A stretch of DNA of 64,000 nucleotides from Hyalangium minutum. Lineage in GTDB: Bacteria > Myxococcota > Myxococcia > Myxococcales > Myxococcaceae. The translations under genes were made by a program, and so were the position numbers. A model generated the notes under the pieces. That model was not told the origin of the DNA, searched no databases, and saw only the letters and a list, made by a program, of their open reading frames with translations. The stretch's first letter is position 1; each line of letters begins with the position of its first letter. The DNA lies in NCBI RefSeq assembly GCF_000737315.1, contig NZ_JMCB01000002.1, positions 310,001-374,000 on the forward strand, in the 5' to 3' direction. Of this stretch, positions 6,946 through 24,945 are shown piece by piece.

Positions 6946-6959
6946 GAAGGAAACGAGGA

Positions 6960-6998
6960 CAAAGAAAAACTCAGCAACCCGTTAAGATTGCTGGGCTT
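6960..6998 (-). terminator. Intrinsic terminator-like hairpin following the tmRNA-like fragment
   Basis: Minus strand cccagcaa-N10-ttgctgag followed by tttttctttt. Confidence 0.6.
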
Positions 6999-7005
6999 CT
7001 CGGGA

Positions 7006-7030
7006 TGGAGGCGGCGGGAATCGAACCCGC
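7006..7030 (-). repeat. tmRNA(ssrA)-like 3' end copy 1 (att-like core)
   Basis: Reverse complement GCGGG-TTCGATT-CCCGC-CGCCTCC-A gives a T-arm, a 3' acceptor strand with U70 (Ala identity) and discriminator A; no 5' half present. Confidence 0.75.
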
Positions 7031-7061
7031 CGCCGAGCGAGAACACAACCTGTGCATCAGG

Positions 7062-9350
7062 TTACGGCGTGGGGCCGCCGAGGAGCGACGCCAGGCGCTG
7101 CGCGAGCCGCGTGCGGGCCGCTTGAACCTGCGCATCCGTCTTCGCCGTGTCGTAGGGCGCCGGGAAGAGGCTTCGCGCGATGTCCTGCGCCTCGGTGCCG
7201 TAGCCCAGCCGGCGCAGCTGCTCGAGGTACTCGTAGTCCTCGTAACCATCGCGCACGTTCTTCATCCGAACCGACTCGATGGGGATGGGGTCCGTGCCTC
7301 CAATGCGGGCCACCGTCCCGGCGTACATCATGTTCCCGTCGCCGTTGCCCGTCGCGTAGTACTGGTCGTCCCAGGCATGGGGCAGGAGCATGGCCATGTC
7401 GTAGTAGAGCGTCCCCGTCAGCCGGTAGCGGAACGCCAGCCACGCCATGGCCCGGCTCTCCGAGGCGGGCGCATCAATCTCGAGCCCCGCCCAGCCGTTC
7501 GTATACGGTTTGTCATTTTCCACGCAGCCGTGGCTTCCGCAGGCGGCGTACATCCAGAGCTCCTTGGGCCGTCCCCCCGAGTTCTGGAGGAACGAGTCAT
7601 AGAGCGGTCGCTGGTCACCCGCGAACCAGGGACCACCGGCCGGCCCGTCCAGCAGCTCGACGTTGACGACCATGATGTCGGTCTTCTCCGTGCCCCCGTT
7701 CTCCTGTGCGCTCTGGATATGGGCGGTCACCATCCGGGGCGCTGCGGGCCAGGCCCTCTCGGCCTGCGCGAGGTAGTCCTTGCAGATCAACCAGTTGTTG
7801 TGGTCGTCGCCATACTTCGGGAAGAAGTGCGGCTCGTCGCACCCGTAGATGAAGGCGATGTTCTCGAACCCGTTCAGCCGCGCCTCTTCCTTCCACGCGC
7901 CCACGTCGTAGTTCTTGTGCATGTTCACCTGGTACGTGGTGAGCCGGGCGCCAGGGAGGCGAGTGGGCGCGGTGCCCTTGATGAAGGGCAGGGTATAGGT
8001 CCGGAACTCCTGGATGCCGGTGGTGCTGCCCGTCCGCAGGTTGGTGGCGTGCGCGCGCGCCGTGGTGATGCGGTTGTCGAGCGCCGAGCGAACGAACAGT
8101 TGCTTGGCCTTGGCGCGGGCGACGAGGTCGGTCTCACAGTTGGGCGTTCCGAGCTGGCACTCCATGCCCGGCGTGAAGCCGAACGAGCTCTTGAGCGTCG
8201 TGGTGGAGGGGAGCGTGAAGTTGAGCACCTTCAGCTCGACAGGGATGTTCTGCGACAGGTTCTCGGCCGTGAGCTGGAGGGTTCCCCGGTACACGCCCGC
8301 GGCGGCGTCGATGGGGACCAGCACGTCGACCCAGAGGGTCCGGTTCTCACCCGCGGGCACATCGACAGGGAACGCGTTTCGCGTCTGGCCCAGCAGCGGG
8401 TCGACCGCGGGGATGAGCGGATCCGGCCAGCGCCCCGTCGCCCCTTCCAGGTCAGACGGGGTGCGGACGTTGTAGTAGCCCTCGCGATACACGGTCACGT
8501 TCCGGCTCGGGATGACGGCGCCGTTAGGGCCGGTGAGCGGCCCGGAGAAGGACGCGCGAAGCCCGCGCAGCGGCGCGCTCGGTGCCTTGACGACGACCTG
8601 GAACGACTCGAACTCGTTGCGAGCCGCGAAGATGGCAGCACGGGACGGGCCCTCAGGCATCTCTTGGGGACGCACCTTCACCGCCGAGCCGAGCACGACG
8701 TAGTTCGAAGGCATGCCCACCTCTACGTAGGCGGCCCGGATGTTGGCATCGGGGCCACCGAGGCTGCGGAAGCGCAGGCGCAGGTCATCCAGCTCCAGCC
8801 GCTGGCCGACTTTGAAGCGGACCGACCGCCAGCCGAACCCCGCCGTCGCGGGGACGAGGACACTGGCGCGCACCTGGCTGCCCGTGACGGCCTCCACGCG
8901 CACCTGCGTCCCAGCGCCGGTGTTGCCGTAGAACCAGGCAGTCACCTCTCCCGGATCGCCGCGGTACATGGACGGGTTCTGCAGGCTCACCTCGGTGACC
9001 TGATCCGCTCCGCCCGCCCAGAGATAATCGTTGTCAGCAGAGACGGCGGCCGGCTGCGTGACCGGCTCGTCGAGCTTCTCCCAGGCGCTGCCCGTGTCGC
9101 CGGTGCGCCATCCGGACTGGACGGTGCCATCCGGGCGGAGGGCCTGACTGGTGACCAGCGCCTCCTGGACCATTCCTGGCTGTTCGGTATCGGCTGTCAC
9201 CGGGGCAGAGGGTTGTTCGGCGTCACCTGCCCCCGGGTCGAGCGGCGGTGAGCCGTCGCCTGCCATCGGGTCGAAGCCCTCGCCACACGACGTCAGCAGC
9301 AGTAAGGCAGTCACAACAGAGAGTGAGAGGGCGCCGAGCCGGCTCCGCAT
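7062..9350 (-). CDS. Lipoprotein with DUF4091 / GH123-like glycoside hydrolase domain
   Basis: Lipobox LTSC; AARNEFESFQVV, YGCDEP, G.LYY, GNGDGNMMY, ESVRMKNVRDGYEDYEY motifs. Confidence 0.85.
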   Translation of the reverse strand: MRSRLGALSLSVVTALLLLTSCGEGFDPMAGDGSPPLDPGAGDAEQPSAPVTADTEQPGMVQEALVTSQALRPDGTVQSGWRTGDTGSAWEKLDEPVTQPAAVSADNDYLWAGGADQVTEVSLQNPSMYRGDPGEVTAWFYGNTGAGTQVRVEAVTGSQVRASVLVPATAGFGWRSVRFKVGQRLELDDLRLRFRSLGGPDANIRAAYVEVGMPSNYVVLGSAVKVRPQEMPEGPSRAAIFAARNEFESFQVVVKAPSAPLRGLRASFSGPLTGPNGAVIPSRNVTVYREGYYNVRTPSDLEGATGRWPDPLIPAVDPLLGQTRNAFPVDVPAGENRTLWVDVLVPIDAAAGVYRGTLQLTAENLSQNIPVELKVLNFTLPSTTTLKSSFGFTPGMECQLGTPNCETDLVARAKAKQLFVRSALDNRITTARAHATNLRTGSTTGIQEFRTYTLPFIKGTAPTRLPGARLTTYQVNMHKNYDVGAWKEEARLNGFENIAFIYGCDEPHFFPKYGDDHNNWLICKDYLAQAERAWPAAPRMVTAHIQSAQENGGTEKTDIMVVNVELLDGPAGGPWFAGDQRPLYDSFLQNSGGRPKELWMYAACGSHGCVENDKPYTNGWAGLEIDAPASESRAMAWLAFRYRLTGTLYYDMAMLLPHAWDDQYYATGNGDGNMMYAGTVARIGGTDPIPIESVRMKNVRDGYEDYEYLEQLRRLGYGTEAQDIARSLFPAPYDTAKTDAQVQAARTRLAQRLASLLGGPTP

Positions 9351-9523
9351 GCAGTCTGATCCTTTGCGCTTTGTATGTGTGTGCTGCCGAACACCTCCCT
9401 TTGCGCGGTGTATTTCCCCGGCGGCTGCTGGCTGGGATTGCGGGTGGGCAACGCCTCATGAGCGCGCTTGGCGCGAGGCGGTACGACCGGCTGTTCGCTC
9501 GATGGGTGAGCGATCAACCTCAG

Positions 9524-10204
9524 TCAGGGCTCGGCCCACTGCCTGAGCAGGTTGTGGTAGATGCCCGTCAGCATGACCAGGGAGGGGCTCTTGGGCACCT
9601 CCCGGGTGAGCTGCATGATCGACGTGTCGAGGTCGAAGAGCAGCGCTCGCTTGCTCACATCGCGAATCATGCTCTGCACCCAGAAGAAGGAGGCCAGCCG
9701 CACTCCTCGCGTCACGGGCGTGACGTGGTGCAGGCTGGAGGCGGGGTAGATGATGAGATCCCCCGCCGGCAGCTTCACCGAGTGGCTGCCATACGTGTCC
9801 TCCACGACGAGCTCTCCCCCGTCGTAGCTCTCCGGGTCGGAGAGGAAGAGCGTCGCCGAGACGTCCGTGCGCAAGCGCAGCGGCGTCCCGGTGATCGGAC
9901 GGATGGCATTGTCCACGTGCGAGCCGAAGTTCATCCCCGGCTCGTAGCGGTTGAACAGCGGCGGGAAGACCCGCTGCGGCAACACCGCCGAGATGAACAG
10001 GGGGCTGCGCTCGAGCGCCCCCAGCACCAGATCCCCCAGCATCCGCGCCGCCGGGCTGTTCTCCGGAAGCTGCAGGTTCTTCTTCACCTGTGCTGACTGG
10101 TGGCCGGCCGTGCTGCGGCCGTCCTCCCAGTCAGCTCGGGCGAAGGTCTCCCGGCAGTGGGTCACCTGCTCGGCGGTGAGGACGTGGGGGATGTGCACCA
10201 ACAT
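9524..10204 (-). CDS. piuC: PKHD-type Fe(II)/2OG hydroxylase (PiuC/YbiX)
   Basis: FNRY...[35 protein letters not shown]. Confidence 0.93.
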
Positions 10205-10206
10205 GG

Positions 10207-12555
10207 CTAGAACCGGTACTTGCCGGACACGCTGACCGTGCGGCCCTCCGCCGGAACCGCGTGCCCTGCGTAGTACTGCGAATAGTAGAGCGCGTTCGTC
10301 AGGTTGTTGAGGTTGAGCTGCACCTCTACCTTGCCCCAGTGGTAGCCCGCCACCGCGTCGAAGCGCCAGTAGTTGGGCACCTTGAGGAAAGCGACCGTCG
10401 CGGAGGCCGGGTTGTTGACCGTCGTCACGCTCTGATAGATGGCGCCGCCTCCCAACGTGAGGTTCTCGATGACCTCGTAGGTCGTCCAGAGCGAGAGGCT
10501 GTTCTTCGGAGTGTTCGGCAGCGGCTGGCCTTCCAGGTAGTCATTGCTGTGCTCCAGGATGGCCGAGTAGATGTGCGTGAAGTTCGCGAACAGCCGCAGG
10601 CGCTCGGTCACGGTGCCGGCCACGCCCACGTTGTAGCCCTCCGCGCGCTGCCGGCCCGCCAGGATCTGCGGAGGCCCGCTCGGATCCGTGTTCGGCACGC
10701 GCGCATTCCTCTTGTCGATGCGGAACACCGCCGCGCTCAGCCCCAGCCGGTCCTCCAGGAGGTCAGCCTTGGCGCCCGCTTCGATGATCCGGTTCTTCTC
10801 GGGCTCGAGGCTCTCGGTGGCTGCATCGAGCGTCCCGGCCTCCGCGGACGGATTGGCGGAGGTGCCATACATGGCATAGACGCTCGTCTTCTCCAGCGGG
10901 TGCAGCACGAGCCCCGCGCGCCAGTTGAGGAAGGTGTCCTTGTTCTCCAGGTGGGTGACGGCTCCCGCGTTGTTCGTCGAGGCGTAGTCCGTGCTGAAGA
11001 TGTCGTAGCGCAGTGAGCCGACGAGCTCGAGGTATTGGGTGATGCCGAGCTGCTCCGACGCATAGAACGCCAACGTGCGCTGGATGCCCGCGTTGCTGGT
11101 GGAGAAGACTCGGTCGACCGAGGAAAGGTCCGGCGTGGGGTTCGGATCAAACAGATCCGCGGGCAGGTTCGTGCCCGAGGGAAGGCCTTGCGCCAACAGA
11201 TTGTAGCGGCGCTGTTCCCGCGTCTCCCGGGACCACTCGAGCCCGATGTTCGCCGTGTGCTTGGCGATACCGGTCTCGAACTCTCCGCGCAGATCCAACT
11301 GGTCCACCAGATAGGTGTTGTCCGTCGCGGTCTCGAAGCGCTGCCGTCCAATCGTGGTGGGAGCCCCGGCGGGCGTCAGGCCGCGCGGCGCCGTGGGCCG
11401 GGCGAACCGATCCACGCCGCCGTAGCGCAGCGTGTTCGTCAGGCTTAGGGCGGGGCTGAACTGGTGCTGGATACGGCCCGTGGCGATGTGGGCGTTGACC
11501 CGCTCCGTGTCCGAGTCCTGCACGCCGTAGAACGTCTCTCGGGGGACTTCCAGGGTGTTCGAGACCGGGTAGCCGTTGAAGTAGGGCTCACCGTAGTCCG
11601 GGACACTGTCCTCTCGCTGGTAGAGGTAGTCGAACTCGAGCGAGGTGCGCTCCGCCAGCGCGAAGCGCAGCGAGGGGGCGATGCCCGCGCGGTTGGCCTT
11701 CACCACGTCGCGGTCCGCCACATCCGCCAGCTGCCCCGTCGCGTTGATGCGGACCTGGAAGCGCTCGGAGACCGCCTCGTTCACGTCCAGCGCCAGCCGC
11801 CCCGACGGCGCCGTGCCCGCCGTGAGCGACAGTTCCTGGAAGGACCTGCGCTGAGGCTTCTTCGTGGCGAGGTTGATGGCCCCTCCCGTCGAGCCTCGGC
11901 CGAAGAGCACGGCGGAGGGCCCGAAGTAGACCTCCACTCCCCCCAGGTTGAAGGTGTCTCGCGTGTACCAGCCGATATCGCGCACGCCGTCGCGGCTCAC
12001 GTCCGTCTGCGCCGAGAAGCCGCGGAGGATGAAGGAGTCTCCCTGCCGGCCGCCCTCGCCCGCGCTGACCGTGATTCCCGAGACGTTGCGCAAGGCCTCG
12101 CGAACCGTCGTCGCCTTCTGCTCCTCGAGCACCTTCTCCGGGACCACCGTGACGCTCTGAGGCGTGTTGATCAGCGGCGTGGGCAGGCGCGTGAGGTTGC
12201 TCTCCTCGACGCGGTAGGTCTCGGCCTCGCCCTGCACCTGGACCGTCGGCAGCACGAACTGGCCCTCGGTCCCCGCCGAATCCTGGGGCGCTGCAGCGGG
12301 AGCCGCCGTCGCTGGCGCCTCGGGCTGGGGCTGCGCGGGGAGTCCCGCCGGCTGCGGTGGAGGCGTGGAGGGACGCTCCTCGGTCACGGGCGGCGCGGCA
12401 GGTGCCGCGGCCTCCTGGGCGAGCGCTCCAGGGGTGATCAGCGCGGACGCCAGTCCGACGGCCGCAGGCCCCCAGGGACGCACCACCCCGCGCAAGCCTC
12501 CCGCGGTGCCCTTCGTCGAGCGAATGCCCGTGCCACCCTTCTTTGACGCTCCCAC
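10207..12555 (-). CDS. TonB-dependent siderophore receptor (Fiu/PiuA-like)
   Basis: Plug motifs [30 protein letters not shown]; C-terminal F; probable GTG start at 12555 (the ORF-track extension runs through a Fur-like box). Confidence 0.92.
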
Positions 12556-12579
12556 GTTTACCCCGCTGTTGGCGTTAAT

Positions 12580-12598
12580 TGTGATTTTGATTCTCAGT
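12580..12598. promoter_or_regulatory. Fur-like box upstream of the TBDR (imperfect)
   Basis: AT-rich tgtgattttgattctcagt shares the GATTCTCA half-site with the 14763 box. Confidence 0.5.
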
Positions 12599-12667
12599 TG
12601 CAAGAAACGGCCGGAGGCTGTCCAGCTCCTGCTTCAAGAAGAGGCGGAGGCGGGTTCAGCTCCTGCT

Positions 12668-13918
12668 TCAGGAAACGACCGGAGGCTGTTCCAGCTCCTG
12701 CTCCGTGGTCGCCACCGTGGACCGGCGGCGGAAGAAGCGCCGCCAGGAGAGGGTGAAGCCGGTCCACATCAGGAAGGCTCCCGCCAAGGAGGCCACTCCC
12801 GCGACGAGCTGGCCCGCCCACCCGAGCGCCTGTCCCGTGTGCAGGAAGCGCAGCCAGGTGCGGATCTGCCGGCCACTGTTGTAGTCAGCGAAGGTCTCCC
12901 GGCGCAGCACCTCCGCCGTGAAGGGATTGAGCGAGAGCTGCGCGGAAGCGAAGAGGGGCCATCCTCCCTGCTCCTTGATGGAGAAGGTCATGGCCTGCGG
13001 CCCGCGTGGACCTCCTTCGCGCGGGGCTCCTTCGCGTGGGCCACCCTCGCGCTGCCCTCCAGGCCGGGGGCCTCCGCCCATGCGCAGCGAGATGCTCTCC
13101 CAGGCGGGCACCTGCTTCTGGGCCTCCGCGAAAAGCGCGTCGACACCCAGGGGCGTGGCACCGGGAGGCGGCTCGGGCACCTTGACTGCGGTCTGCCCGA
13201 ACGGGCCCGAGTTGGCGGGCGGCTCATTCCCGGTGAGTGTGAAGATGAGGTCCGAGACCGCCTTGTAGGACATGACCACGCCCGACGCGGTCAGGACGAC
13301 GAGGATGGGCATGGCCCAGAAGCCCGCCGCGTTGTGCCAGTTGAAGTCTCGCGCCTTGCCCTTCAGCCCGCCCTTGAACCAGAGGACCGGGCGCACCGTC
13401 TTCCACGTCCACCTGCGAGGCCACCAGAGGTACAAGCCAGAGACAGCCAGGAACAGGAAGGCCGCATTGCAGACGCCGGTGACTCCTCGGCCCAGTGCGC
13501 GATGGTCCTCGGAGGTGGCCAGCCACCGGTGCAGTTCTTCCATTTGATGCAAGAAGGCACGCAGCCCTTTTCCTCCCTGCTCCCGGACGTCGCCCGTGTA
13601 GGGGTCCACGTAGACGCCGCTCCCGCGGCCCGTGCTCACCAGCACGGCGGACTCCGGATCGGCGTACACCGTCACGCCTTGAGGCTGCACCCCAGGCTTG
13701 GCCGCGCGCACTCGCGCCAACAGCTCTTCCACGGGGAGGCGGGCGGCTCCGGACGGGGGGGGCTGCACCTGCCGGGCCTCGCGATCCGCCCATTGCTCGA
13801 GCTGCGGCTCGAAGGCGAGCGCCGCTCCCGTCAGCGACATGAGGCCGATGATGATCCCAGCCACGAGGCCGGAGACCAGGTGCATCCAGAAGAGGATCGT
13901 GCGGAAGGTGCTTTTCAT
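12668..13918 (-). CDS. PepSY-associated TM domain protein (PiuB-like)
   Basis: FWMHLVSG, SLTGA, YVDPYTG, LHRWL, SGLYLWWP, WHNAAG, LHTG. Confidence 0.9.
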   Translation of the reverse strand: MKSTFRTILFWMHLVSGLVAGIIIGLMSLTGAALAFEPQLEQWADREARQVQPPPSGAARLPVEELLARVRAAKPGVQPQGVTVYADPESAVLVSTGRGSGVYVDPYTGDVREQGGKGLRAFLHQMEELHRWLATSEDHRALGRGVTGVCNAAFLFLAVSGLYLWWPRRWTWKTVRPVLWFKGGLKGKARDFNWHNAAGFWAMPILVVLTASGVVMSYKAVSDLIFTLTGNEPPANSGPFGQTAVKVPEPPPGATPLGVDALFAEAQKQVPAWESISLRMGGGPRPGGQREGGPREGAPREGGPRGPQAMTFSIKEQGGWPLFASAQLSLNPFTAEVLRRETFADYNSGRQIRTWLRFLHTGQALGWAGQLVAGVASLAGAFLMWTGFTLSWRRFFRRRSTVATTEQELEQPPVVS

Positions 13919-13919
13919 G

Positions 13920-14681
13920 TCACTTGAGGGAGAACTGGACGGGGATGTCGACGATCACTCGCACCAGCCGGCCGTGCCGTCCGAGGGCGGGGGAGAAGCG
14001 CCACTGACGGACGGCGGCCAGGGCGGCCGCGTCGAGCTCCGGCACCGAGCGGATGATGCGCAGGCTCTCGGGTTCGACGCGCCCATCGATCCCAATGATG
14101 ATGCGGACCAGGACCAGCCCCTCGATGCCTTGGGAGCGGGCCGGCCGGGGATATTGAGGGAGGACCTGCTGGAGCACGGTGGGCGGACGCGACACCTGCT
14201 TCACGTCAACCGCCTCGCCGCCCGAGGCGACTCCCAGCCCCGTGCCAACACCTTCCTTCGCAGCGGAGTTCACGAGGCCCGCGACCACCGCTCCCATCGC
14301 TCCGGTTCCCGCCGCGGACTCAGGCTCTTCGAGGGCAGGGGCTTCCTCCTGCGGGGCTTGCTCCACTTCTTCAGGGACGGGCGCCTTCTCCGGCAGGGGC
14401 GCTGGCACCTGCGGTGGCGGCTTGAGACGAGCAGGGCGTGCACGGGCCCTGGTCATCACTCGCTGGGGCACTGCCGCTGGCGCGGCAGGGGCCGGGGCCG
14501 CCGCAGGGGGCGCCATGAAGGTGAGGAGTACCAACGGCGGGTCCTCGGGAGGTGGCGCTGTCTGCGGGGAGAGGCGGGGAACCCAAAGCACGGCCAAGAC
14601 CGCCCCGACGTGGACGAACGCGGCGATCATCAAGGCCCATCCCCAGCGCTCCCAGTCGCTCGCCCCAGCCGCATGGCCCAT
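13920..14681 (-). CDS. tonB: Energy transducer TonB
   Basis: N-terminal TM helix with His, Pro-rich linker, C-terminal PQYP..AR..GIEG.V...WRF.PA; ATG 14681 preferred because the longer start overlaps the Fur box. Confidence 0.85.
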   Translation of the reverse strand: MGHAAGASDWERWGWALMIAAFVHVGAVLAVLWVPRLSPQTAPPPEDPPLVLLTFMAPPAAAPAPAAPAAVPQRVMTRARARPARLKPPPQVPAPLPEKAPVPEEVEQAPQEEAPALEEPESAAGTGAMGAVVAGLVNSAAKEGVGTGLGVASGGEAVDVKQVSRPPTVLQQVLPQYPRPARSQGIEGLVLVRIIIGIDGRVEPESLRIIRSVPELDAAALAAVRQWRFSPALGRHGRLVRVIVDIPVQFSLK

Positions 14682-14762
14682 GCGGAAGAGCCCCGCTGCG
14701 TCTCTCGCGCCCGCTCTCTGCGCGAGGGCCGGACCCTGGCCGTACGGTTCGAAAGGCGTGAT

Positions 14763-14781
14763 ATTGAGAATCGTTCTCAAT
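14763..14781. promoter_or_regulatory. Fur-like 19-bp palindromic box
   Basis: attgagaatcgttctcaat, a near-perfect 19-bp dyad about 80 bp upstream of the tonB-pepSY-TBDR-piuC run. Confidence 0.75.
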
Positions 14782-14916
14782 TTCATTGCTCCCACAAGTA
14801 TCTTGGGGGAGCGGTTGCGTCAACCCTGCCTGGATCAAAATGGTTGGCGCGGGACGAGGGAGGAAGTCCATGCCTACTGCGAGTGTTCTGATCACCCGAA
14901 CTTGGGGTGAAGACCT

Positions 14917-15978
14917 TCAGGGCTTGGGGACAAAGCCGAGCAAGGTCCGGGGGAACTTGTCAGTCACCAGCAGGAAGCCCCGGTCCTCCAGCCGCACCAC
15001 GCCCTCCCAGTTCCGGGCTGCTTCATTGGAGAGCTGGAGCTGAAGGGGTGGCCTGTCTGTGAGCACGATGCCGCCTGGAGTGACTTGGAGTTCGATGAGC
15101 CGTTCCACCTGGGGCTTCTGCGCTTGGGTCGGTCCGGTGCCATACCGGGCCATGAGCGGATCCGGCGCCGGCTTGAAGTGTTTCTGAGTGCCTGGGTAGT
15201 TGTAGTTCATCACCCAGAACCGGCCCGTCGCATCCAGCGAGGTGGCATCGGTGATGCGGTACTCGATCGCGGGCAGCGTGAGCTTTCCGGAATGGCCCAA
15301 CGAGCCATCGAAGCTCTCGGCGGCCGGCGCCGGGTTCACACGGGCCCCATTCGCTTCGTACAGGGCCAGCACCCGGTTCTCGCCTACCACCAGCGCCTCG
15401 AAGCCCGCGTTCGATACGTCGGCTGGCAAGGGCAGAACCGCCTGAGGTGAAGCCTCGAGCTTCAGCACGCTCAGATCCGGCGCGATGCGGCCGGTGACCA
15501 GGAACGCCTTCCCGGCGAGCCGGTGGGTCTCCACGGTCAGATACGCCTGCTCCCCGGAGAAGCCGAGCGCCTCGTAGCCTTCAAAGCCGGTGATGCGCTT
15601 CTCGAGGCCGCCGCTGTCGAACACGATGCAGCGAGGCTCCAGCGGCCCCGTCGCGGTGTGATCGATCCGCGCGAGGAGTTCCGCTTTCGAGACGGTGTAG
15701 AGGCAGGCGGGGCCGTCATCCTCCCAGCCGGGATATTGCGGCAGCATGACGAGGTGATCGCCGTACCACGCGAGCCCCGAGAGCTCGGCGTCTTCGCTCT
15801 GAAGCGCGCCACCCAGGGGCAGGAGGGTGACGATTTGCTCCGGCGCTGTCCCCCGTAACGCCGGAGGCACATCCGCTAGAGCCACCGGCTGGGAAGAGCT
15901 CGAGACACACCCGGCCATGGCCAGGGAGAGAACGAGCGCGCGAACCGTCCAGCGCACCTGGTTTCTGTCTCGTGTCAT
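14917..15978 (-). CDS. Hypothetical lipoprotein, probable beta-propeller
   Basis: Lipobox MAGC; repeated ELSGLAW / GYEAL / GFEAL / NWEGV blades resembling SdiA-regulated or phytase-like propellers. Confidence 0.7.
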   Translation of the reverse strand: MTRDRNQVRWTVRALVLSLAMAGCVSSSSQPVALADVPPALRGTAPEQIVTLLPLGGALQSEDAELSGLAWYGDHLVMLPQYPGWEDDGPACLYTVSKAELLARIDHTATGPLEPRCIVFDSGGLEKRITGFEGYEALGFSGEQAYLTVETHRLAGKAFLVTGRIAPDLSVLKLEASPQAVLPLPADVSNAGFEALVVGENRVLALYEANGARVNPAPAAESFDGSLGHSGKLTLPAIEYRITDATSLDATGRFWVMNYNYPGTQKHFKPAPDPLMARYGTGPTQAQKPQVERLIELQVTPGGIVLTDRPPLQLQLSNEAARNWEGVVRLEDRGFLLVTDKFPRTLLGFVPKP

Positions 15979-16008
15979 GTTTCGCCCTGACCCGGTTTCT
16001 TCGGTGGC

Positions 16009-17022
16009 TCAGGCGCGCTCGAAGCGGACCTGCGCACGGCTCATCACGTGCTCCACCACCAGCAGGTGCCACGCCACTTGATCGATGCGCGCCATCTGCT
16101 GGGGCTCGGCGCGCAGGGACTGCGCCAGCTCCTCCATCGTCACTCCCGCCGCGGCCGCATGCTCTCGAAGCAGCGCCTCCACGCGCTCGGGAGTCAGGGT
16201 GAGCCCGTCCCGCTCGCGGATGGCGGCCAAGGCCAGGCCGATCCTCAGCCGGTTCTCCACTTCGGCGCGGGTCCGTGCGTCGCGAAGCCAGGTCTGGAGC
16301 GACTCCTGCTGCTGCTCCGGGGAAAGCTCCAGCTCGCGGACGGTAATGCCCTCGCTGGCGTTCCAGCGCGCGATGATTTCCCGGTCGATGAGCTCGGGAG
16401 GAACCTTCACCTCGGTGCGCGCGGCCACCTCGTCCAGCACCCGCTGCTGGGCCAGGAGCCCCAACTGCTGCACCGTCTCTTGCTCCATTTGCTGGTACAC
16501 GCTGCGCATGGCCTCCGCCAGGGTCGCGCCGCGGCCCAGCGCTTGGAGGAACTCCGGGCTCTCCAGATCGGGGTACGTCACCTGGCGCGCTGCGTGGATT
16601 TGAACCATGAAGCGGGCGGGCATGTTGCGCAGCGTCTCGACGGGGTAATCGGCCGGCAACGTGACGTCCACCGCCACGGTCTTGTTGGGGGTGTGGCCAA
16701 CGAGGGCCTCGTACAACCCGGGGAGCTGGGGCTCGGGCAGCAGGGGCAGCCACACCTCTTTGCGGGCACTGAAAGGCACGAGGCGGCCGTTCGAGAAGCC
16801 CACGATGCTCAGCAGCACCTCGTCCTTCCAGGCCACCGGCTCGTTGGGGTACCGGTAGCGCTCGTTGGCGAGCGGTCGCGCCAGCTCGAGGAAGCGCTGC
16901 TGGACTTGCTCCGCGGTGAAATCCTTGGGGGCGGGGACCGTGACTTCCAGTCCCTCCAGGGAGGGCGCCTTGGCCCGAGGCAGCTTCGCCTCGGCCAGAT
17001 CGGGAACAACGAAGCGACTCAT
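16009..17022 (-). CDS. Trigger-factor-like protein (FKBP-like plus C-terminal chaperone domain) lacking the ribosome-binding domain
   Basis: Begins at the PSLEGLEVTVP linker; LPGLYEALVG, FPADY-like LPADYP, VKVPPELIDREI, RLRIGLALAAI; no GFRxGxxP motif; 337 aa. Confidence 0.8.
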   Translation of the reverse strand: MSRFVVPDLAEAKLPRAKAPSLEGLEVTVPAPKDFTAEQVQQRFLELARPLANERYRYPNEPVAWKDEVLLSIVGFSNGRLVPFSARKEVWLPLLPEPQLPGLYEALVGHTPNKTVAVDVTLPADYPVETLRNMPARFMVQIHAARQVTYPDLESPEFLQALGRGATLAEAMRSVYQQMEQETVQQLGLLAQQRVLDEVAARTEVKVPPELIDREIIARWNASEGITVRELELSPEQQQESLQTWLRDARTRAEVENRLRIGLALAAIRERDGLTLTPERVEALLREHAAAAGVTMEELAQSLRAEPQQMARIDQVAWHLLVVEHVMSRAQVRFERA

Positions 17023-17070
17023 GGAAGGCTCCTCCTGGAGGGGGGCAGGGATCCGCCGCCGGCCCTGAGC

Positions 17071-18096
17071 TTAGCCGTTCTTCTTCGGGAGGAACGCACC
17101 GACGAGGGAGGAGACCGCCGAGATCCCCGCGCCCACCTGCGAGACGATGGGGATGTTGGTGGCGGCGGCGACGGAGCCCGCGGCCGAGATGGTGGAGGTC
17201 ACCTTGGCGCCCGTGGAGGACTTGGGGTCCGCCCAGGTGCGCGCCGCCTGGCCGACGTCCAGCGCCGCCAGACCGATGTTGAGGCCCGGCACGAAGCGGC
17301 CGGCCACCTTCGCCGCGGTGCCCGCGCCCTTGGCGCCCGCCTTCACGCCATCCAGCGCCGCGTCGGCCGCCTGGGTCACTTTGGCCGCGTTGCCCGCGCC
17401 GCCCGCGGCCTTCTCACCCGACTTGATGACCTTGCCCTCGATCTTCCCGGCCAGCCCGCCCAGGTGCCCCTTGTGCAGCAGCTCCGCCACGGCCATGCCG
17501 GCGCCGGCGATCCCGCCCTTGATGGCGCTCTTGTCCTTGAGGACCGAGGCCATCGCGTCCGCGTGGCGCAAGGGCCCGCCCTTGTGAGCGGCCTCGGCGG
17601 CCGCGTTGGCCACCGCGCCCGACAGCGGGCCGGCCTTGCCGCCCACCAGGTCCTTGGCCACCTGACCCAGCTTGTCGAAGCTCTTGGCGGAGGAGAAGGC
17701 GGCGGCAGTCTCGAGCGCGCCCTTGGTGGTGCCCAGCACGCCGCGCGCCAGGCCCATGGCGTTCTCCGCGATGGCATGGCCGTCACCGCTCTTCACCGCC
17801 TGCGCCAGCCCGTTGGCGTTGGTGCCGATGCCGACGACGCCGCCCGCCAGGCCCGCGGCGCCCAGGCCCCGGCCCGCCAGGCCCGTGCCACCGTTGTGGT
17901 AGTTCTGGGTCATCGTCTTCCCCGGAGAGAAGAAGTCCTTCGCGTTGAAGGGGGCGGTGGGCGGCTTGACGGTGGTGGCCGGGGGAGGAGACAGCGGCTT
18001 GGCCTTGTCCAGCGCAGGCTTGGTGAAGTCCGAGGAGGGCGTGGTGGTGGAGGGCTGGGGACGGGGAGCAACGGGGCTGGAGTTGATCGTGGTCAT
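17071..18096 (-). CDS. Gly/Ala/Lys-rich hypothetical protein with S/T/P-rich N-terminus and hydrophobic glycine-zipper segments
   Basis: ATG with GAGG RBS; strong G/C third-position bias; no Sec signal peptide visible. Confidence 0.75.
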   Translation of the reverse strand: MTTINSSPVAPRPQPSTTTPSSDFTKPALDKAKPLSPPPATTVKPPTAPFNAKDFFSPGKTMTQNYHNGGTGLAGRGLGAAGLAGGVVGIGTNANGLAQAVKSGDGHAIAENAMGLARGVLGTTKGALETAAAFSSAKSFDKLGQVAKDLVGGKAGPLSGAVANAAAEAAHKGGPLRHADAMASVLKDKSAIKGGIAGAGMAVAELLHKGHLGGLAGKIEGKVIKSGEKAAGGAGNAAKVTQAADAALDGVKAGAKGAGTAAKVAGRFVPGLNIGLAALDVGQAARTWADPKSSTGAKVTSTISAAGSVAAATNIPIVSQVGAGISAVSSLVGAFLPKKNG

Positions 18097-18164
18097 GGCG
18101 GCATCCTCGGAGTGGCGGGGGGCTTGGAAGGGGTGGGAGTCAGTGGCTGACGGACATGAGCATT

Positions 18165-18181
18165 AGCAGGAGGTGTGCCAA
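18165..18181 (-). promoter_or_regulatory. Sigma54 (-24/-12) promoter
   Basis: Minus strand tTGGCACacctcCTGCT, GG-N10-GC, about 70 bp upstream of ATG 18096. Confidence 0.75.
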
Positions 18182-18289
18182 CGCCCCCTGCATCCCACAG
18201 TGGCCCCCTAACCCAGCCATTTTCCAAGAGAAGCGCTCGAGAGCCACCGGCTTGGGGGGCTTCTGGTTTACTTCCCTGGCGGGCTTCCC

Positions 18290-18357
18290 GGGACTCCAGT
18301 CATCAGCCGAGGCCCCTTTACCGTGGGACTCCAGTCATCGGCTGATGAGTCCAGTCA
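18290..18357. repeat. Direct/inverted repeat cluster, candidate enhancer-binding-protein sites
   Basis: gggactccagtcatc at 18290-18304 and 18325-18339; 11-bp inverted repeat 18300-18310/18338-18348; extra tccagtca at 18350. Confidence 0.6.
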
Positions 18358-18474
18358 CCAAGCGGGACTCGAGGCGGGTGGCGGGCTCGGCCAGGAAACT
18401 GGATACGGCAGAGTGGACATGGGTTGGATGAGCCCTGAGTCTCGCCAGTCATTGGCTCACCCCCGAGGCATCTC

Positions 18475-20775
18475 TTGAAAACTCTCTCCCGGCACCTGTT
18501 CTGGGTGCTCGCGCTGGCGTTGCTCGCGAGCTGCTCTGCGTCTTCTCCCGCCCCTGGCGCTGCCCAGTTCGCTGTCTCCCTCCCCCAGGCCCTCTCCTCC
18601 AGCGACGTGACCCGTATTCGGGTGACGGTCTCCGCCTCCGATATGGAGGCCCTCTCCGTCGAGCTCGCCAAATCCAACGGTGCCTGGGGAGGCCTCATCG
18701 GCAATCTCCCCGCGGGCGCCAACCGCTCCTTTCTCGCCCAGGCCTTCGACTCCTCCGGCGCGCTCCTCTTCCAGGGCCAGACGTCCGGCGTCTCCATCGC
18801 TCCCAACCAGACCACCGCCGTCGCCCTGACCCTCCAACAGGTGTCTGCGCCTCCTCCCTATGGCAACGAGGCTCCCATCATTGACTCCCTCGTCGCCTCG
18901 TCGACCTCTGTGCTCACCGGTGGCGCTCTCTCCCTGACGGCCACCGTGCATGATCCCAATCCTGGCGACACCCTCACCCTGAACTGGACAGCCTCCGGCG
19001 GCTCCTTCTCTGCGCCTTCCGCTCTGGACACGTCCTGGACGGCGCCTGCTTCCGCGGGCATCCAGACCCTCATCCTCACGGTGACCGACTCCCAGGGGGC
19101 TGCTGTCTCTGTCTCCCTGGCGGTCAACGTCTCCAGCGCCTCCACGGGCAACGCCGCCCTGAACATCTCCTTCAACCTCTGGCCCACGGTCTCCCGGGTG
19201 TCGGCCTCCCTGAGCCGCCTCGACGCAGGACAGTCCACCACTGTCTCTGTCTTGGCCTCCGATGGGGATGGCGATGGCCTGTCCTACCAGTGGACTTCTT
19301 CTTGCCCGGGCACCTGGACGGACGCCTCCTTCAGCACGGCCTCCTTCGTCCCTTCCTCGGTGCCGGCCGGTGCGTGTAACAACTGCCAGCTCACCGTCAC
19401 CGTCCAGGACAGCCGGGGAGGGCAGACCACGGGCTCCCTCGCCTTGTGCGTCGCTTCCGCTTCCATGGAGCGCTTCCCCCCGCGCATCTCCCATCTCTAC
19501 CAGTCCGCCACCTCCACCGCTCCGGGCCAGACGGTCACCTTCGAGGTCACCGCCCTGGATCCCCAGGCCAGCTCCCTGACGTTCACGTGGAGCGCTACCA
19601 CTGGCTCCCTGGGCACACCGGTGAACGGCGCCTCCTCCAGCCACGTCACCTGGACGGCCCCCTCCTGTGCCTCCGGCGGCATGACCCCTGGCATTACCGC
19701 CACCGTCACCAACGCCTTCCACCTCTCCGCCACACAGAATTTCCGGGTGGAAGGAGTGCCCGCCTGTCCTTCGGGATGGACCTCGACGCAAGCCATGAGC
19801 TTGCCTCGCTACCACCACACGGCGACGCTGCTGCCCAACGGCAAGGTCCTCGTCGCGGGTGGAGTCTTTGTCAGCGCTCATGCGATGGCCGAGGTCTATG
19901 ACCCGGCCTCGGGCACTTGGAGCGCGACGGGCTCCATGGCCCAGGGTCGTTACATCCACACGGCGACGCTGCTGCCCAATGGCAAGGTCCTCGTCACGGG
20001 TGGCTCCAACGGCGTGGCGTCCTTGGCGACGGCGGAGGTGTATGACCCAGCCTCGGGCACCTGGAGCGCGACGGGCCCCATGGCTTCGCCTCGCAGCGAG
20101 CACACGGCGACGCTGCTGCCCAATGGCAAGGTCCTCATCGCGGGCGGATACACGAACCCGGGCACCCATTCCTCCAGTTCCCTGGTGACGGCGGAGGTGT
20201 ACGACCCGGCCTCGGGCACCTGGAGCACGGCCGGCGCCATGGCCACGCCTCGATCCGTCCACACAGCGACGCTGCTGCCCAACGGCAAGGTCCTCGTCAC
20301 GGGGGGCTCGAACAGCGATTTCCTGGCGACAGCGGAGGTGTACGACCCGGCTTCGGGCACCTGGAGCACGGCCGGCGCCATGGCCTCGCCCCGCCGGTAC
20401 CACACAGCGGCGCTGTTACCCAACGGCAAGGTTCTCATCGCGGGCGGATACAGCAGCCCCATCTTCGCGACGGCAGAGGTATACGACCCGGTCTCGGGCA
20501 CCTGGAGCATGACGGGCTCCATGGTCACACCCCGCTACCTCCACACGGTGACGCTGCTGCAAAGCGGCAAGGTGCTCGTCGCGGGGGGAGCCAATGGCCT
20601 CAACCACAGGGAAGCGGAGGCATATGACCCGGCTTCAGGCACCTGGAGTGCGGTCCCTTCCATGATCCATGTCCGCCGCAGCCACGCGGCGGCGCTGCTG
20701 CAAGACGGCAGGGTTCTCATCTCCGGCGGATATAATGGCGGTGGTTTCCCAGATGCGGAGCTGTACTCACCCTGA
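18475..20775 (+). CDS. Lipoprotein with Ig-like/PKD repeats and Kelch beta-propeller (paralogue of 4238..6490)
   Basis: TTG start, lipobox LASC; six HTATLLPNGKVL..GG...AEVYDPASGTW units; shared CNNC motif. Confidence 0.9.
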   Translation: MKTLSRHLFWVLALALLASCSASSPAPGAAQFAVSLPQALSSSDVTRIRVTVSASDMEALSVELAKSNGAWGGLIGNLPAGANRSFLAQAFDSSGALLFQGQTSGVSIAPNQTTAVALTLQQVSAPPPYGNEAPIIDSLVASSTSVLTGGALSLTATVHDPNPGDTLTLNWTASGGSFSAPSALDTSWTAPASAGIQTLILTVTDSQGAAVSVSLAVNVSSASTGNAALNISFNLWPTVSRVSASLSRLDAGQSTTVSVLASDGDGDGLSYQWTSSCPGTWTDASFSTASFVPSSVPAGACNNCQLTVTVQDSRGGQTTGSLALCVASASMERFPPRISHLYQSATSTAPGQTVTFEVTALDPQASSLTFTWSATTGSLGTPVNGASSSHVTWTAPSCASGGMTPGITATVTNAFHLSATQNFRVEGVPACPSGWTSTQAMSLPRYHHTATLLPNGKVLVAGGVFVSAHAMAEVYDPASGTWSATGSMAQGRYIHTATLLPNGKVLVTGGSNGVASLATAEVYDPASGTWSATGPMASPRSEHTATLLPNGKVLIAGGYTNPGTHSSSSLVTAEVYDPASGTWSTAGAMATPRSVHTATLLPNGKVLVTGGSNSDFLATAEVYDPASGTWSTAGAMASPRRYHTAALLPNGKVLIAGGYSSPIFATAEVYDPVSGTWSMTGSMVTPRYLHTVTLLQSGKVLVAGGANGLNHREAEAYDPASGTWSAVPSMIHVRRSHAAALLQDGRVLISGGYNGGGFPDAELYSP

Positions 20776-20814
20776 AGACATTCAAGCGGGGCAGAGCCGA
20801 GGCCGGGCTCTGTG

Positions 20815-20834
20815 TGGAGGCGGCGGGAATCGAA
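20815..20834 (-). repeat. tmRNA-like 3' end copy 2 (att-like core)
   Basis: tggaggcggcgggaatcgaa, a 20/20 match to 7006-7025. Confidence 0.7.
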
Positions 20835-20859
20835 GGCGTGCTCATCTGCTTGAAAGGAC

Positions 20860-21594
20860 GTGGCCATGCGTTTCCGAACGTGCAGCGCACTCCTGTTTCT
20901 CCTCTCGGCCTGCGCCACGACAGAGCCGAGCATCGGAGAACTGGAGGGCCCTGATCCGAGGTTCGCCAACCTTCAGCGGGCGGCGCAGTACCCCTGGACG
21001 GATGACGGGCATTGCGTGGTGCGGGAAGCCTCTCACGAATGGCCGATTCTGGCGGAGCGGTGCTTTCACGCTCTCGATCACGACAGGGTCAAGTTTCGGG
21101 ATGTCGCCGGAAGATGCGCTGTCGCCTCTGCGGGTGCGGCGGCCGTAGGCGTGGGGCTCTGCGTCTTTGTGGCACCCGAGATCATTGTTGGAGCGGTGAT
21201 CATCGCTGGCGTTGTCGTGGTGGCTGTTGCCATCAAAGGCGAGTTGGATGCATACGAGCGAAGGGCATCTCGTGATCGTGCGAGGACCGAGGCTCAAACA
21301 CGGCCATCCCATGAGCAGGAGCCCTCGGCGAATCGAAAGCCCAGCCCCAAAAATCAACCCGACCCCGAGAGACGCCCGAAGCCGTTCATTCACCCCAATC
21401 CCACTCCGGAGGAACGGGAGGAATGGAGGAAGCGGTGTCTTGACTATTACGTGCGCTGTAGCGAGTTCGTGAAAGGGGATAAGCAGTGGCGCGTCTTCGG
21501 GGAGCGCCAGTGTCAATCGTGCTGGTTGCTTTGCGAGCGTACAGGTCAGTGGCCAGCAGAAGCGAACGAGAGACCCTGCCCAGGAGGTGATTGA
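20860..21594 (+). CDS. Lipoprotein, putative polymorphic toxin (SitA-like architecture) with Cys-rich C-terminus
   Basis: Lipobox LSAC; hydrophobic GVGLCVFVAPEIIVGAVIIAGVVVVAVAI segment; Pro/charged linker; 6 Cys in the last ~55 aa. Confidence 0.7.
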   Translation: MAMRFRTCSALLFLLSACATTEPSIGELEGPDPRFANLQRAAQYPWTDDGHCVVREASHEWPILAERCFHALDHDRVKFRDVAGRCAVASAGAAAVGVGLCVFVAPEIIVGAVIIAGVVVVAVAIKGELDAYERRASRDRARTEAQTRPSHEQEPSANRKPSPKNQPDPERRPKPFIHPNPTPEEREEWRKRCLDYYVRCSEFVKGDKQWRVFGERQCQSCWLLCERTGQWPAEANERPCPGGD

Positions 21595-22085
21595 CCGTGA
21601 GGCGCACGCGCGAAGACTGGTGGAAGAGCGTCGCTGAGCGACGCGACGATCACTTGATCAAGCTCTTGAAGGCCAAGGCGCCCTGGCCGGACTTCAAGCA
21701 GGCGATCCGTGCTCAAGAGGCAGAACTGATCCGGGAGGCGCAGACGCCCGTTGAACGGCGGCACATCCAACAGCTTTCCATGCCGGTGCTGCTGACCGAG
21801 GCTTACGCGAGGGGTCTTGAGTGGGACGAATTTGGCCCACTGGTGCGCCGTATTCAGCGGCTCGGCTACGCAGACATGACCCACCGGATCCACGTGGCGT
21901 GTCTCTTTGTCCAATCATTGCCCCGTTTTCCAGAGCGAGCCCGGCAAGCGTTCGCCATGCTTGATGGAGTGGAGGGGAGCCTCAAGCGCATCCGCAAGAG
22001 TCACTACCTACGTAAAGAAGGGATGGAGGGTATAGCCCATGCGCGCGCTGTGGCGGCAGCCGCTGGCATTTCATCGCCAAAGTAG
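21591..22085 (+). CDS. Putative immunity protein (164 aa, helical)
   Basis: TTGA overlap with the upstream lipoprotein stop, GGAGG RBS; small cytoplasmic protein with no signal peptide. Confidence 0.6.
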   Translation: MTVRRTREDWWKSVAERRDDHLIKLLKAKAPWPDFKQAIRAQEAELIREAQTPVERRHIQQLSMPVLLTEAYARGLEWDEFGPLVRRIQRLGYADMTHRIHVACLFVQSLPRFPERARQAFAMLDGVEGSLKRIRKSHYLRKEGMEGIAHARAVAAAAGISSPK

Positions 22086-22139
22086 GTGATCCAGAAGTAT
22101 GGGACATGGCACCATCTGCGGCTTGCGCCATACGTGCAC
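22086..22139 (+). pseudogene. Decayed tyrosine integrase C-terminal motif
   Basis: gtg atc cag aag (t) atg gga cat ggc acc atc -14 nt- tac gtg cac reads VIQK.MGHGTI.....YVH, matching integrase IQELMGH.TI...RY.H with two frameshifts. Confidence 0.45.
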
Positions 22140-22186
22140 CATGGATGGAGGAAGCCGCTAACCATCCGTAGCCACGGAGTGAAAAG

Positions 22187-22211
22187 TGGAAGCGGCGGCA
22201 ATCGAACCCGC
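22187..22211 (-). repeat. tmRNA-like 3' end copy 3 (degenerate att-like core)
   Basis: tggaagcggcggcaatcgaacccgc, a 23/25 match to 7006-7030. Confidence 0.65.
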
Positions 22212-23787: not shown

Positions 23788-23825
23788 TAGGGCAAGATGC
23801 ACACGCGGTGTCGGAGGACGATGCG

Positions 23826-24929
23826 ATGGCTTCTCCCTTCTCCCTGGTGACTGCTCCGCCGCTGCCCGCGGCCCAGCCCCCCCCGATCGCCCCCGATCAG
23901 GCGTGGCTGCGGATGGTGCAGACCCAGGTGGAGGCCTCGCTCGCCGAGCTGTTCGAGCTGCCCGATGAAGCCGCCTTCGATCCACGCTGGACCCAGGCCA
24001 TGGAGCGCACGCGCCAGTACGCCCTGCGGCCGGCCAAGCGGGTGCGCCCCGCGCTCGTCGTGGCCGGGTACAGCCTGGCCCGAGGCTCGCTGAAGGTTCC
24101 CGCAGGGCTGTGGCGCTTCGCGGCAGGGCTCGAGTTGCTGCACACCTTCCTCCTCATCCATGACGATGTGGCTGATCAGGCCGAGCTGCGCCGAGGGGGG
24201 CCTGCGCTCCACCACCTGCTGGGCGCTGGGCGGGCAGGCGAGGACCTCGCCGTGGTGGTGGGCGACCACCTGTTCTCTCGCTCGCTCGAGGCCATGCTCT
24301 CCTCCGAGCTGCGGGGGGCCTCGGCCGCCTCGCGCTACTACCTCGCCGTGTGCCGGCACACCGCCGCCGGCCAGTACCTGGACCTCAGGCTCGCGTCTGC
24401 GCCGCTGTCCCAGGTGACGCTCCTCCAGGCGCTGCGCGTGGCCCACCTGAAGACGGCGCGTTACGGCTTCTGCGCCCCGCTCGTCTGCGGCGCCATGCTG
24501 GCCGGCGCGGATTCGGAGCTGTGCGAGGCCCTGGAGCGCGTGGGCCGCCATGTGGGGCTCGCCTTCCAGCTGCGCGATGACTTGATCGGCCTGCTCGGCG
24601 ACGAGCGCGTGGCGGGCAAGGCCGCGGATGGCGACTTCGTGCAGGGCAAGCGCACCGTGCCCGTGCTGGCGGCGTACCTGCGCGCTCCAGCGGCGGCCCG
24701 CGAGGAGCTGGAGCGGCTCTGGGCGCTGCCCCCCGAGGCCAAGGATGCGGCGGCGCTGGCCCAGGCTCGCGCGCTGGTGGAGGAGTACGGAGGCCGGGCC
24801 GCCTGCGAGCGGCTGGTGGAGCGGGCCTCGCGCACGGGGCGGCGGGCGCTGCAGGCGCTGCCGGACGAGGGCGGCGTGCGGGACTTGCTGGACACTCTCA
24901 TCACCCGGCTGGCGCACCGCGCGGCCTGA
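23826..24929 (+). CDS. crtE: Geranylgeranyl diphosphate synthase
   Basis: AKRVRP, LIHDDVADQAELRRG, GQYLD, KTARY, FQLRDD. Confidence 0.92.
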   Translation: MASPFSLVTAPPLPAAQPPPIAPDQAWLRMVQTQVEASLAELFELPDEAAFDPRWTQAMERTRQYALRPAKRVRPALVVAGYSLARGSLKVPAGLWRFAAGLELLHTFLLIHDDVADQAELRRGGPALHHLLGAGRAGEDLAVVVGDHLFSRSLEAMLSSELRGASAASRYYLAVCRHTAAGQYLDLRLASAPLSQVTLLQALRVAHLKTARYGFCAPLVCGAMLAGADSELCEALERVGRHVGLAFQLRDDLIGLLGDERVAGKAADGDFVQGKRTVPVLAAYLRAPAAAREELERLWALPPEAKDAAALAQARALVEEYGGRAACERLVERASRTGRRALQALPDEGGVRDLLDTLITRLAHRAA

Positions 24930-24945
24930 GACAACGAGCGTCGCC

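Follow-up and report, generated by a model that had tools for sequence, protein, structure and literature searches.

The present analysis deals with a stretch of 64,000 nucleotides (nt) from Hyalangium minutum (the window) and, within it, with a segment of 1.35 kb (20835-22186) that carries two genes on the plus strand. The first gene, P1 (20866..21594), codes for a lipoprotein of 242 amino acids (aa), a putative toxin, and the second, P2 (21597..22085), for a protein of 162 aa that is its putative cognate immunity protein. An initial annotation of this DNA had described a lipoprotein with a hydrophobic hairpin, a linker and a six-cysteine end, followed by a coupled small helical protein, and each of these elements was found where it had been placed. 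P1 is preceded by a conserved 19-nt leader with the ribosome-binding site AAAGGA (20847..20865, plus strand), which marks the 5' limit of nucleotide homology among the copies of this cassette. Residues 1-16 of P1 comprise the signal peptide and the lipobox, and the lipobox LLSAC (residues 12-16) is kept throughout the family. Residues 17-84 form a conserved Cys-containing domain, putatively periplasmic. This is followed by a hydrophobic block (residues 85-123; 21118..21234, plus strand; Kyte-Doolittle) which is split at Pro104-Glu105, the hydrophobicity being continuous over residues 83-130 (Kyte-Doolittle value of at least 1.6 in the 19-aa windows starting at 83-112, with the exception of 87). 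The block of about 40 residues is long enough for two helices and is a putative membrane hairpin, the alternative being a single transmembrane (TM) helix at residues 106-123. A K/R-rich segment comes directly after the second hydrophobic segment, and residues 124-180 (21235..21405, plus strand) consist of a charged helix and then a Pro/Lys-rich disordered linker. In Pfam and NCBIfam P1 gave weak matches to families with two TM segments, at noise level. The AlphaFold2 model of the whole of P1 was poor, with a predicted local distance difference test (pLDDT) score of 53 and an unconfident hydrophobic block, and a Foldseek search with this model gave no match in the PDB (best E-value 6.9).

The C-terminal domain of P1 (CT, residues 181-242; 21406..21591, plus strand) is the putative toxin warhead. 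It contains six invariant Cys residues (C191, C198, C216, C219, C223 and C238) and was modelled with confidence (pLDDT 82-88) as a helix (181-199), a short beta-hairpin and a second helix (213-226). In the model the first helix bears C191 and C198, spaced as CX6C, and the second bears C216, C219 and C223, again a CX6C pair with one additional Cys. Since the CX6C motifs are matched on two antiparallel helices and the sixth Cys stands in the tail, the model suggests that CT carries three disulfides. CT is probably a disulfide-stapled helical hairpin of about 55 residues and probably non-enzymatic. The six-cysteine domain had not been recognised earlier as a known nuclease or deaminase, and in agreement with this no match was found in Pfam, NCBIfam, PADLOC or PDB sequence profiles or by Foldseek against the PDB; nor did the Pfam, Foldseek and PDB-profile searches reveal a nuclease motif or match.

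P2 is TPR-like and has no signal peptide. Its translation starts at a GTG codon (21597) 2 nt past the stop of P1, with a GGAGG sequence inside the final P1 codons, and a gap of 0-2 nt or an overlap between both genes recurs at all homologous loci. Together with the seven-helix AlphaFold2 model of P2 (pLDDT 95.9), this bears out the translational coupling to a small helical protein. In a Foldseek search of the PDB, P2 had no better E-value than 0.48 and only a generic resemblance to TPR-like or helical-repeat proteins. P2 had no Pfam, NCBIfam, PADLOC or meaningful PDB sequence-profile match and corresponds to no catalogued immunity family. Several genomes have more than one copy of P2. The P2 sequence was also seen partly fused to other domains, to a PadR domain in P0203 (Stigmatella aurantiaca) and to a DUF2379 domain in P0199, and these two may be decayed or orphan immunity genes.

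The relatives of P1 share its N-terminal part (the N-module) and differ in what follows it. The first ~165 aa of P1 show 60-80% identity to proteins of about 300 aa with a DUF6310 C-terminus. An exhaustive phmmer search with P1 residues 1-145 gave 123 representative clusters, and more than 10 distinct C-termini were found on the one N-module. These include DUF6310, the six-Cys type (also in versions without the linker), Ntox16, HExxH-bearing and GIY-YIG-like ends and several tiny Cys-rich ends; the HExxH, GIY-YIG-like and D..ExK-like motifs were judged by eye, while the C-terminus of P0228 matches Ntox16 of Pfam with 27.2 bits (cutoff 25). A check for variable C-termini had been proposed in the initial annotation, and it gave a decisive answer: one N-module carries many unrelated ends and not always the same one. 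Eight of the N-module relatives (P0220, P0222, P0234, P0236, P0252, P0255, P0267 and P0269) have ends of about 45 residues with the spacing CxCxC ... CxxxC ... C, which recall cysteine-stabilised alpha/beta (defensin-like) motifs.

It was further found that the downstream gene switches with the C-terminus, as expected of the toxin/immunity-like layout that had been proposed. The six-Cys type is followed by P2 (L001, L002 and L003) and DUF6310 is followed in every case by DUF5953 (L004, 5001-6675; L005, 5001-6690; L006, 5001-6664; L210, 6235-7267). DUF5953 proteins have no signal peptide. DUF6310 and DUF5953 probably form a toxin-immunity pair of their own, and literature searches turned up no papers on them. 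An FDAL..LWE[IV]K motif, PD-(D/E)xK-nuclease-like by eye, and four conserved Cys residues were observed in DUF6310.

CT and P2 also occur together behind other export modules. A second module is a short lipoprotein without the hydrophobic hairpin, with the motif CCLKEHPGAWERC (L213, L214, L215 and L218), and in P0208 CT and P2 stand behind a plain signal peptide. As these hairpin-less lipoprotein and signal-peptide versions exist, CT appears to be exported. P2 homologues lie downstream of CT in 11 of the 12 metagenome loci, and the contig of the twelfth stops inside CT. The second short lipoprotein module GCYMNGMGCQPGDDTETCCLKEHPGAWERC was seen to bear the same six-Cys domain at L213, L214, L215 and L218 and at L008/L009 (3748-4288). 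At both L008 and L009, found in separate samples, the reading frame of this module is not that of CT, which suggests a shared frameshift or pseudogene. The degrees of conservation also differ between the parts of the cassette. L002 and L003 are 87% identical in CT, 80% in P2 and 71% in the N-module, while the window and L003 are 66% identical in CT, 64% in P2 and 81% in the N-module. Judged by these values, the identities of CT and P2 vary together and independently of that of the N-module.

Variable C-termini, a switching downstream gene, the presence of CT on other modules and some recognised toxin ends (Ntox16) are the marks by which a polymorphic toxin system is known in comparative genomics, and on such sequence comparisons P1-P2 qualifies as a putative one. 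We regard it as reasonably probable, from this architecture, that P1 and P2 are the toxin and the immunity protein of a polymorphic toxin family restricted to Myxococcaceae and relatives. That the warhead is toxic and that P2 neutralises it, the topology of P1, the disulfides, a transfer between cells and the route of recombination are what we infer within this reading.

The composition of the segment sets it apart from its surroundings. The GC content of 20835-22186 is 61.1% versus 69.3% for the window, and that of third codon positions (GC3) is 66% in P1 and 71% in P2 versus 79-94% in 14 neighbouring genes, so the visibly lower GC that had been remarked on earlier, without computation, is real. 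Pairs of P1 and P2 with 73-88% nucleotide identity to the window were found in unrelated contexts: after a STIG1-like protein and tRNA-Arg in L001, between hrcA and kup in L002 (Hyalangium minutum) and between a kinase and a cupin in L003. The view of the operon as a compositionally foreign unit thus agrees with both its GC3 and its scattered occurrence. The best relatives of the flanking gene yfcH are from Myxococcaceae metagenome-assembled genomes (77-80% aa identity), followed by Corallococcus (63-66%). Beside yfcH, at 23808-26493, lie geranylgeranyl-diphosphate-synthase-like and phytoene-desaturase-like genes (carotenoid; judged from translations). Synteny on the yfcH/crt side extends to Corallococcus and the Myxococcaceae metagenome-assembled genomes, and the opposite side is unrelated DNA in the relatives.

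The segment 20835-22186 is the exact interval between two copies of a short repeat, which had been called a tmRNA (transfer-messenger RNA) core. Three copies lie in the window, all of them on the minus strand. Copy 1 (7006..7030) has an intact 9-bp T-arm hairpin and, with copy 3, flanks 15.2 kb. Copy 2 (20815..20834) is the exact 20-nt tmRNA 3' end (sense TTCGATTCCCGCCGCCTCCA) and is without the 5' half of the T-stem. Copy 3 (22187..22211) is diverged, with 2 mismatches in 25 nt, and lies 34 nt past the yfcH stop codon. Exact matches to the 20-mer TGGAGGCGGCGGGAATCGAA stand at 7006-7025 and 20815-20834, and a copy with 2 mismatches at 22187-22206. When a 16-mer was searched with 3 mismatches allowed, 5 matches were obtained versus 1.1 expected, and 5 were reached in 0 of 100 shuffles. 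On the minus strand the 20-mer reads as the T-loop, the 3' half of the T-stem and the acceptor strand with U70 and the discriminator A. Exact copies of it were found in at least 120 stretches of viral contigs, and in the 30 of these that were examined by ARAGORN it was the 3' terminus of a tmRNA gene in 7 and that of a tRNA in none, which justifies the tmRNA label. In an Rfam E-value search the part of the tmRNA model that aligned to the 20-mer was the T-arm alone (17 nt), far under the threshold, and an alignment to "permuted tmRNA" at 19 bits was rejected (threshold 47). Because no intact tmRNA or tRNA was found in the window (ARAGORN; Rfam at gathering threshold), the repeats are to be taken as scars and not as genes. 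The tmRNA end with the copy-1 flank had no match in viral contigs.

It was also considered whether the repeats are mere GC-rich terminator hairpins. This was rejected as the only explanation, since the match to the tmRNA terminus extends over 20 of 20 nt. The repeats may serve as terminators also, and the copy-3 scar downstream of yfcH may double as the terminator of that gene. The DNA directly 3' of copy 1 on the minus strand (6950-7005) holds a strong hairpin (fold z = -4.3) which, with its U-run, resembles a terminator. This hairpin is conserved with L010 and gives the impression that the native terminus of a tmRNA gene has been kept while the gene itself is missing. At L210 (5321-5362) a tmRNA-end fragment takes the form of a 12-bp minihelix of acceptor and T-arm followed by six T, plausibly an intrinsic terminator.

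Between copies 1 and 2 lies a block of 13.8 kb (7031..20814) without an integrase. It encodes a GH123-like protein, a PKHD-type 2OG-Fe(II) hydroxylase, a TonB-dependent receptor, a PepSY_TM protein, TonB, Kelch lipoprotein B and three further proteins without clear family, one of them with a match to a trigger-factor C-terminal domain. The TonB-receptor, PepSY and TonB genes look like a set for the uptake of iron or siderophores. Lipoproteins with PKD/Big_9 and Kelch domains occur as two paralogues (4016-6490 and 18475-20775), each of which stops just before a tmRNA-end fragment (7006 and 20815, respectively), and at L010, the closest relative locus, a Kelch lipoprotein likewise stands beside the single tmRNA-end fragment. 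Over 115 nt, made up of copy 1 and its left flank, L010 is 92% identical to the window, and in L010 36 nt separate this stretch from the yfcH stop codon, versus 15.2 kb in the window. Everything between copies 1 and 3 is therefore either an insertion in the window or a repeat-mediated deletion in L010. The genes of the 13.8-kb block were absent downstream of yfcH in Corallococcus and the other relatives checked.

The association of such cassettes with tmRNA ends is not confined to the window. Fragments lie within 1.5 kb of family cassettes at eight further loci (L002, L005 with two fragments, L210, L211, L216, L218 and L219) and directly abut the operon upstream in L218 and downstream in L211 and L216, with varying orientation and distance. 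The association with tmRNA-derived attachment-site (att) scars is therefore recurrent and not a local accident. The copy-3 variant (24 of 24 nt) adjoins a DUF6310/DUF5953 cassette in Hyalangium rubrum. The spacer between P2 and copy 3 (22086..22186, 100 nt) is outside the conserved cassette and lies downstream of copy 3 on the minus strand; it is about 80% alike, by eye, to the sequence after the tmRNA-end fragment beside the L210 cassette, where some 60 nt resemble its part 22100-22186. Insertion sequence (IS) transposases or a group II intron reverse transcriptase-like open reading frame (ORF) were found near cassettes in three loci. In L005 (Hyalangium rubrum) a TraA gene (Myxo_TraA_N; 9793-10924) stands 3 kb from the DUF6310/DUF5953 cassette, an anecdotal case, and a 2.8-kb segment with a helix-turn-helix (HTH) gene, itself between two tmRNA-end fragments, lies between TraA and the cassette.

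How far the 1.35 kb is a unit of mobility in its own right is a separate question from that of function. The operon most likely arrived by site-specific or repeat-mediated recombination. The initial annotation had spoken of a minimal mobile cassette precisely bracketed by direct repeats, and both parts of this description hold in part. The interval from copy 2 to copy 3 is exact and the repeats are att-like, with an empty site for the 15.2 kb as a whole. On the other hand, homology with the other copies starts at 20847 (L001, 12 nt past copy 2), 20849 (L002) or 20855 (L003) and stops at the end of P2 (22077-22085), leaving the 100-nt spacer outside, and neither an integrase nor an intact tmRNA nor shared ends beyond the operon were found. 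The scan for an integrase or mobility gene covered 13 proteins (the two Kelch lipoproteins, the large ORFs between copies 1 and 3, and yfcH with its neighbour), and among the genomes compared none differs by the 1.35 kb alone. These observations favour an account in which the 1.35 kb is not an independent mobile unit but the tip that survives from a larger tmRNA-targeting island, now decayed. It would spread only as a passenger or by homologous recombination, and the three repeats would be scars left by successive integrations or by recombination of one scar with another. The lack of shared terminal sequences, the size of the empty site in L010 (the whole 15.2 kb and not 1.35 kb) and the variable distance and both orientations of tmRNA fragments beside other cassettes all point the same way, and by a narrow measure we hold this account to be a probable one. 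Against it stand the close fragments at the eight further loci, and those that abut the operon would fit att-flanked mini-elements mobilised in trans, like cis-mobilisable elements.

As to function, several observations weigh against a toxin-immunity pair. Library and Foldseek searches revealed no catalytic motif in CT and no known-toxin relative of it, and a toxin of 55 residues would be very small. For an immunity protein, P2 varies rather little (mean column identity 58%). P2 has no signal peptide, and CT appears to lie outside the cytoplasm and to be rich in disulfides, so that contact between them could be made only ahead of export or following import. The search for CT on Rhs, contact-dependent inhibition (CDI) or type VI secretion system (T6SS) scaffolds found none; this was a weak search of a 5.8-billion-protein database, with 5 matches, and since known members were missed it gives no evidence of absence from such scaffolds. 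The topology of P1 presents a further difficulty. In distant relatives the first hydrophobic segment bears charged residues (Asp/Lys) and a near-invariant Cys (C99), so that P1 may instead have a single-span topology with a cytoplasmic C-terminus. A hairpin as hydrophobic as the one predicted should hold P1 in the inner membrane, and such trapping makes cell-to-cell transfer hard to explain and is a poor fit with Lol sorting and outer-membrane exchange.

Some of these points would be accounted for if P1 acted in cis, as part of a membrane-tethered toxin-antitoxin or an abortive-infection/programmed-death module. P1 would then be a lipidated, single-span protein with a sensor outside and an effector inside, and P2 would restrain the effector until an envelope signal (phage or damage) arrives, with nothing delivered to other cells. 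The lack of a signal peptide in both P2 and DUF5953 is in keeping with this arrangement, and so is the K/R-rich segment after the second hydrophobic segment. The Asp/Lys residues and C99 of the distant relatives would suit a periplasmic, disulfide-bonded position more than a TM helix, and nuclease-like DUF6310 and Ntox16 C-termini would do their work in the cytoplasm. We nevertheless think a cis-acting module unlikely: elsewhere the six-Cys domain sits directly on a lipoprotein signal or a plain signal peptide without any TM helix and is hence exported, its six invariant Cys with CX6C matched on two helices suit disulfides and not the cytoplasm, the hydrophobic block of P1 has room for two helices, and PADLOC gave no match. 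It could also be possible that no toxin is involved, P1 being an envelope lipoprotein with a lineage-specific tail for adhesion, signalling or metal binding and P2 a cytoplasmic partner, regulator or maturation factor. A CT without a catalytic motif or known toxin fold, six Cys that could bind metal, a P2 that is a generic TPR-like scaffold and the fair conservation of both proteins would all be compatible with such a role. It is difficult to reconcile with the many unrelated C-termini on one N-module, Ntox16 and nuclease- or peptidase-like motifs among them, with a downstream gene that switches with the C-terminus, with the movement of CT and P2 onto other export modules, and with the foreign composition, the scattered contexts and the adjacent mobile elements. 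We know of no housekeeping system with such shuffling of N-module, C-terminus and partner, and a role of this kind seems improbable to us.

If P1 and P2 are a toxin-immunity pair, the following course of events could be envisaged. P1 would be exported by Sec and lipidated at Cys16, and the N-module, with its small disulfide-type domain and hydrophobic hairpin, would be the membrane anchor or trafficking part. The Pro-rich linker would display the variable C-terminal warhead on the periplasmic side. P2, made by translational coupling, would stay in the cytoplasm and neutralise the cognate warhead, and its location there fits a cytoplasmic target. Warhead and P2 would be swapped jointly, as one module, among N-terminal delivery modules, and the operon itself would be cargo without an integrase, lying among DNA that has piled up at a scar of the tmRNA attachment site. 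A bolder version, to which we give tentative and limited credence, is that these are undescribed myxobacterial kin-discrimination toxins in which a short lipoprotein-hairpin module delivers or self-inserts tiny, disulfide-stapled, non-enzymatic warheads, with cytoplasmic TPR-like immunity proteins that neutralise them, on integrase-less tmRNA-att mini-cassettes mobilised in trans.

Myxobacterial kin recognition relies largely on big repertoires of lipoprotein toxin-immunity pairs. If P1-P2 represents a further family, the present counts of compatibility loci per myxobacterial genome would be too low, and the delivery module would be much shorter and the warheads not nucleases. The pair is a compact test case, with a warhead of 55 residues and a confidently modelled partner of 162 residues. 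It bears on how an exported Cys-rich domain could be neutralised from the cytoplasm and on how a hairpin lipoprotein could gain access to its target. In addition, a testable function is proposed for DUF6310 and DUF5953, and tmRNA-derived scars could be acting as collecting points for such cassettes.

Exported toxins with a cytoplasmic neutraliser are well known, as in SitA/SitI, CdiA-CT/CdiI and the nuclease colicins. Small folds comparable to CT are likewise known. Alpha-hairpinins and CHCH-type folds are cysteine-stabilised helical-hairpin mini-proteins, and CT recalls them in its small size and in its two antiparallel helices with matched Cys (C191/C198 and C216/C223). It differs from them in having an extra beta-hairpin and a third Cys pair, and it shows no sequence or Foldseek match. 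With ssrA- or tRNA-integrated islands and cis-mobilisable elements the window shares direct repeats that are the last 20 nt of tmRNA, three tandem copies of them, a foreign composition and an empty site. Unlike ssrA islands, it has no intact ssrA at either end and no integrase or excisionase, its smallest unit is 1.35 kb and a scar lies downstream of yfcH.

Scans of P1, P2 and their relatives against Pfam, NCBIfam and PADLOC gave only noise-level transmembrane or low-complexity matches and no named family. The polymorphic toxin systems nevertheless offer a close parallel in design; they include MafB, CdiA-CT, Rhs and the lipobox-anchored APD1/APD2 effectors of Amoebophilus, and Ntox16 is one of their catalogued domains (PMC3482391). 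As in these systems, a lineage-specific N-terminus is combined with a variable C-terminus, the C-terminus and the immunity gene recombine jointly, and one relative carries Ntox16. By way of difference, the N-module and the six-Cys warhead have no Pfam match, P2 matches no catalogued immunity family, and no type V, VI or VII secretion system genes (T5SS, T6SS, T7SS) are adjacent to P1-P2. The nearest comparison within the taxon is with SitA/SitI, the lipoprotein toxin-immunity pairs of Myxococcus that are exchanged by TraAB through the outer membrane (families SitA1/2, 3, 4, 5, 6 and 7; PMC5562445, PMC8546572). Six SitA families have been described, each defined by an escort domain of ~375 aa (PMC8546572), and the SitA C-terminal domains that have been assayed or annotated are nucleases (PMC5562445, PMC8546572). 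The parallel with SitAI drawn in the initial annotation stands in so far as both have a lipobox lipoprotein with a conserved N-module and a variable C-terminus, a cytoplasmic partner gene directly downstream, several loci per genome and ties to mobile DNA. It does not extend to the domain by which the SitA families are defined: the conserved N-region of P1 is ~125 aa long (ending at ~125-145), includes a hydrophobic hairpin and is set apart by description from the ~375-aa escort. Anchorage in the inner membrane through such a hairpin would also speak against Lol transport and TraAB exchange. P1-P2 has no SitB-like gene, and unlike the SitA nucleases P1 ends in a 55-residue six-Cys mini-domain without a nuclease motif.

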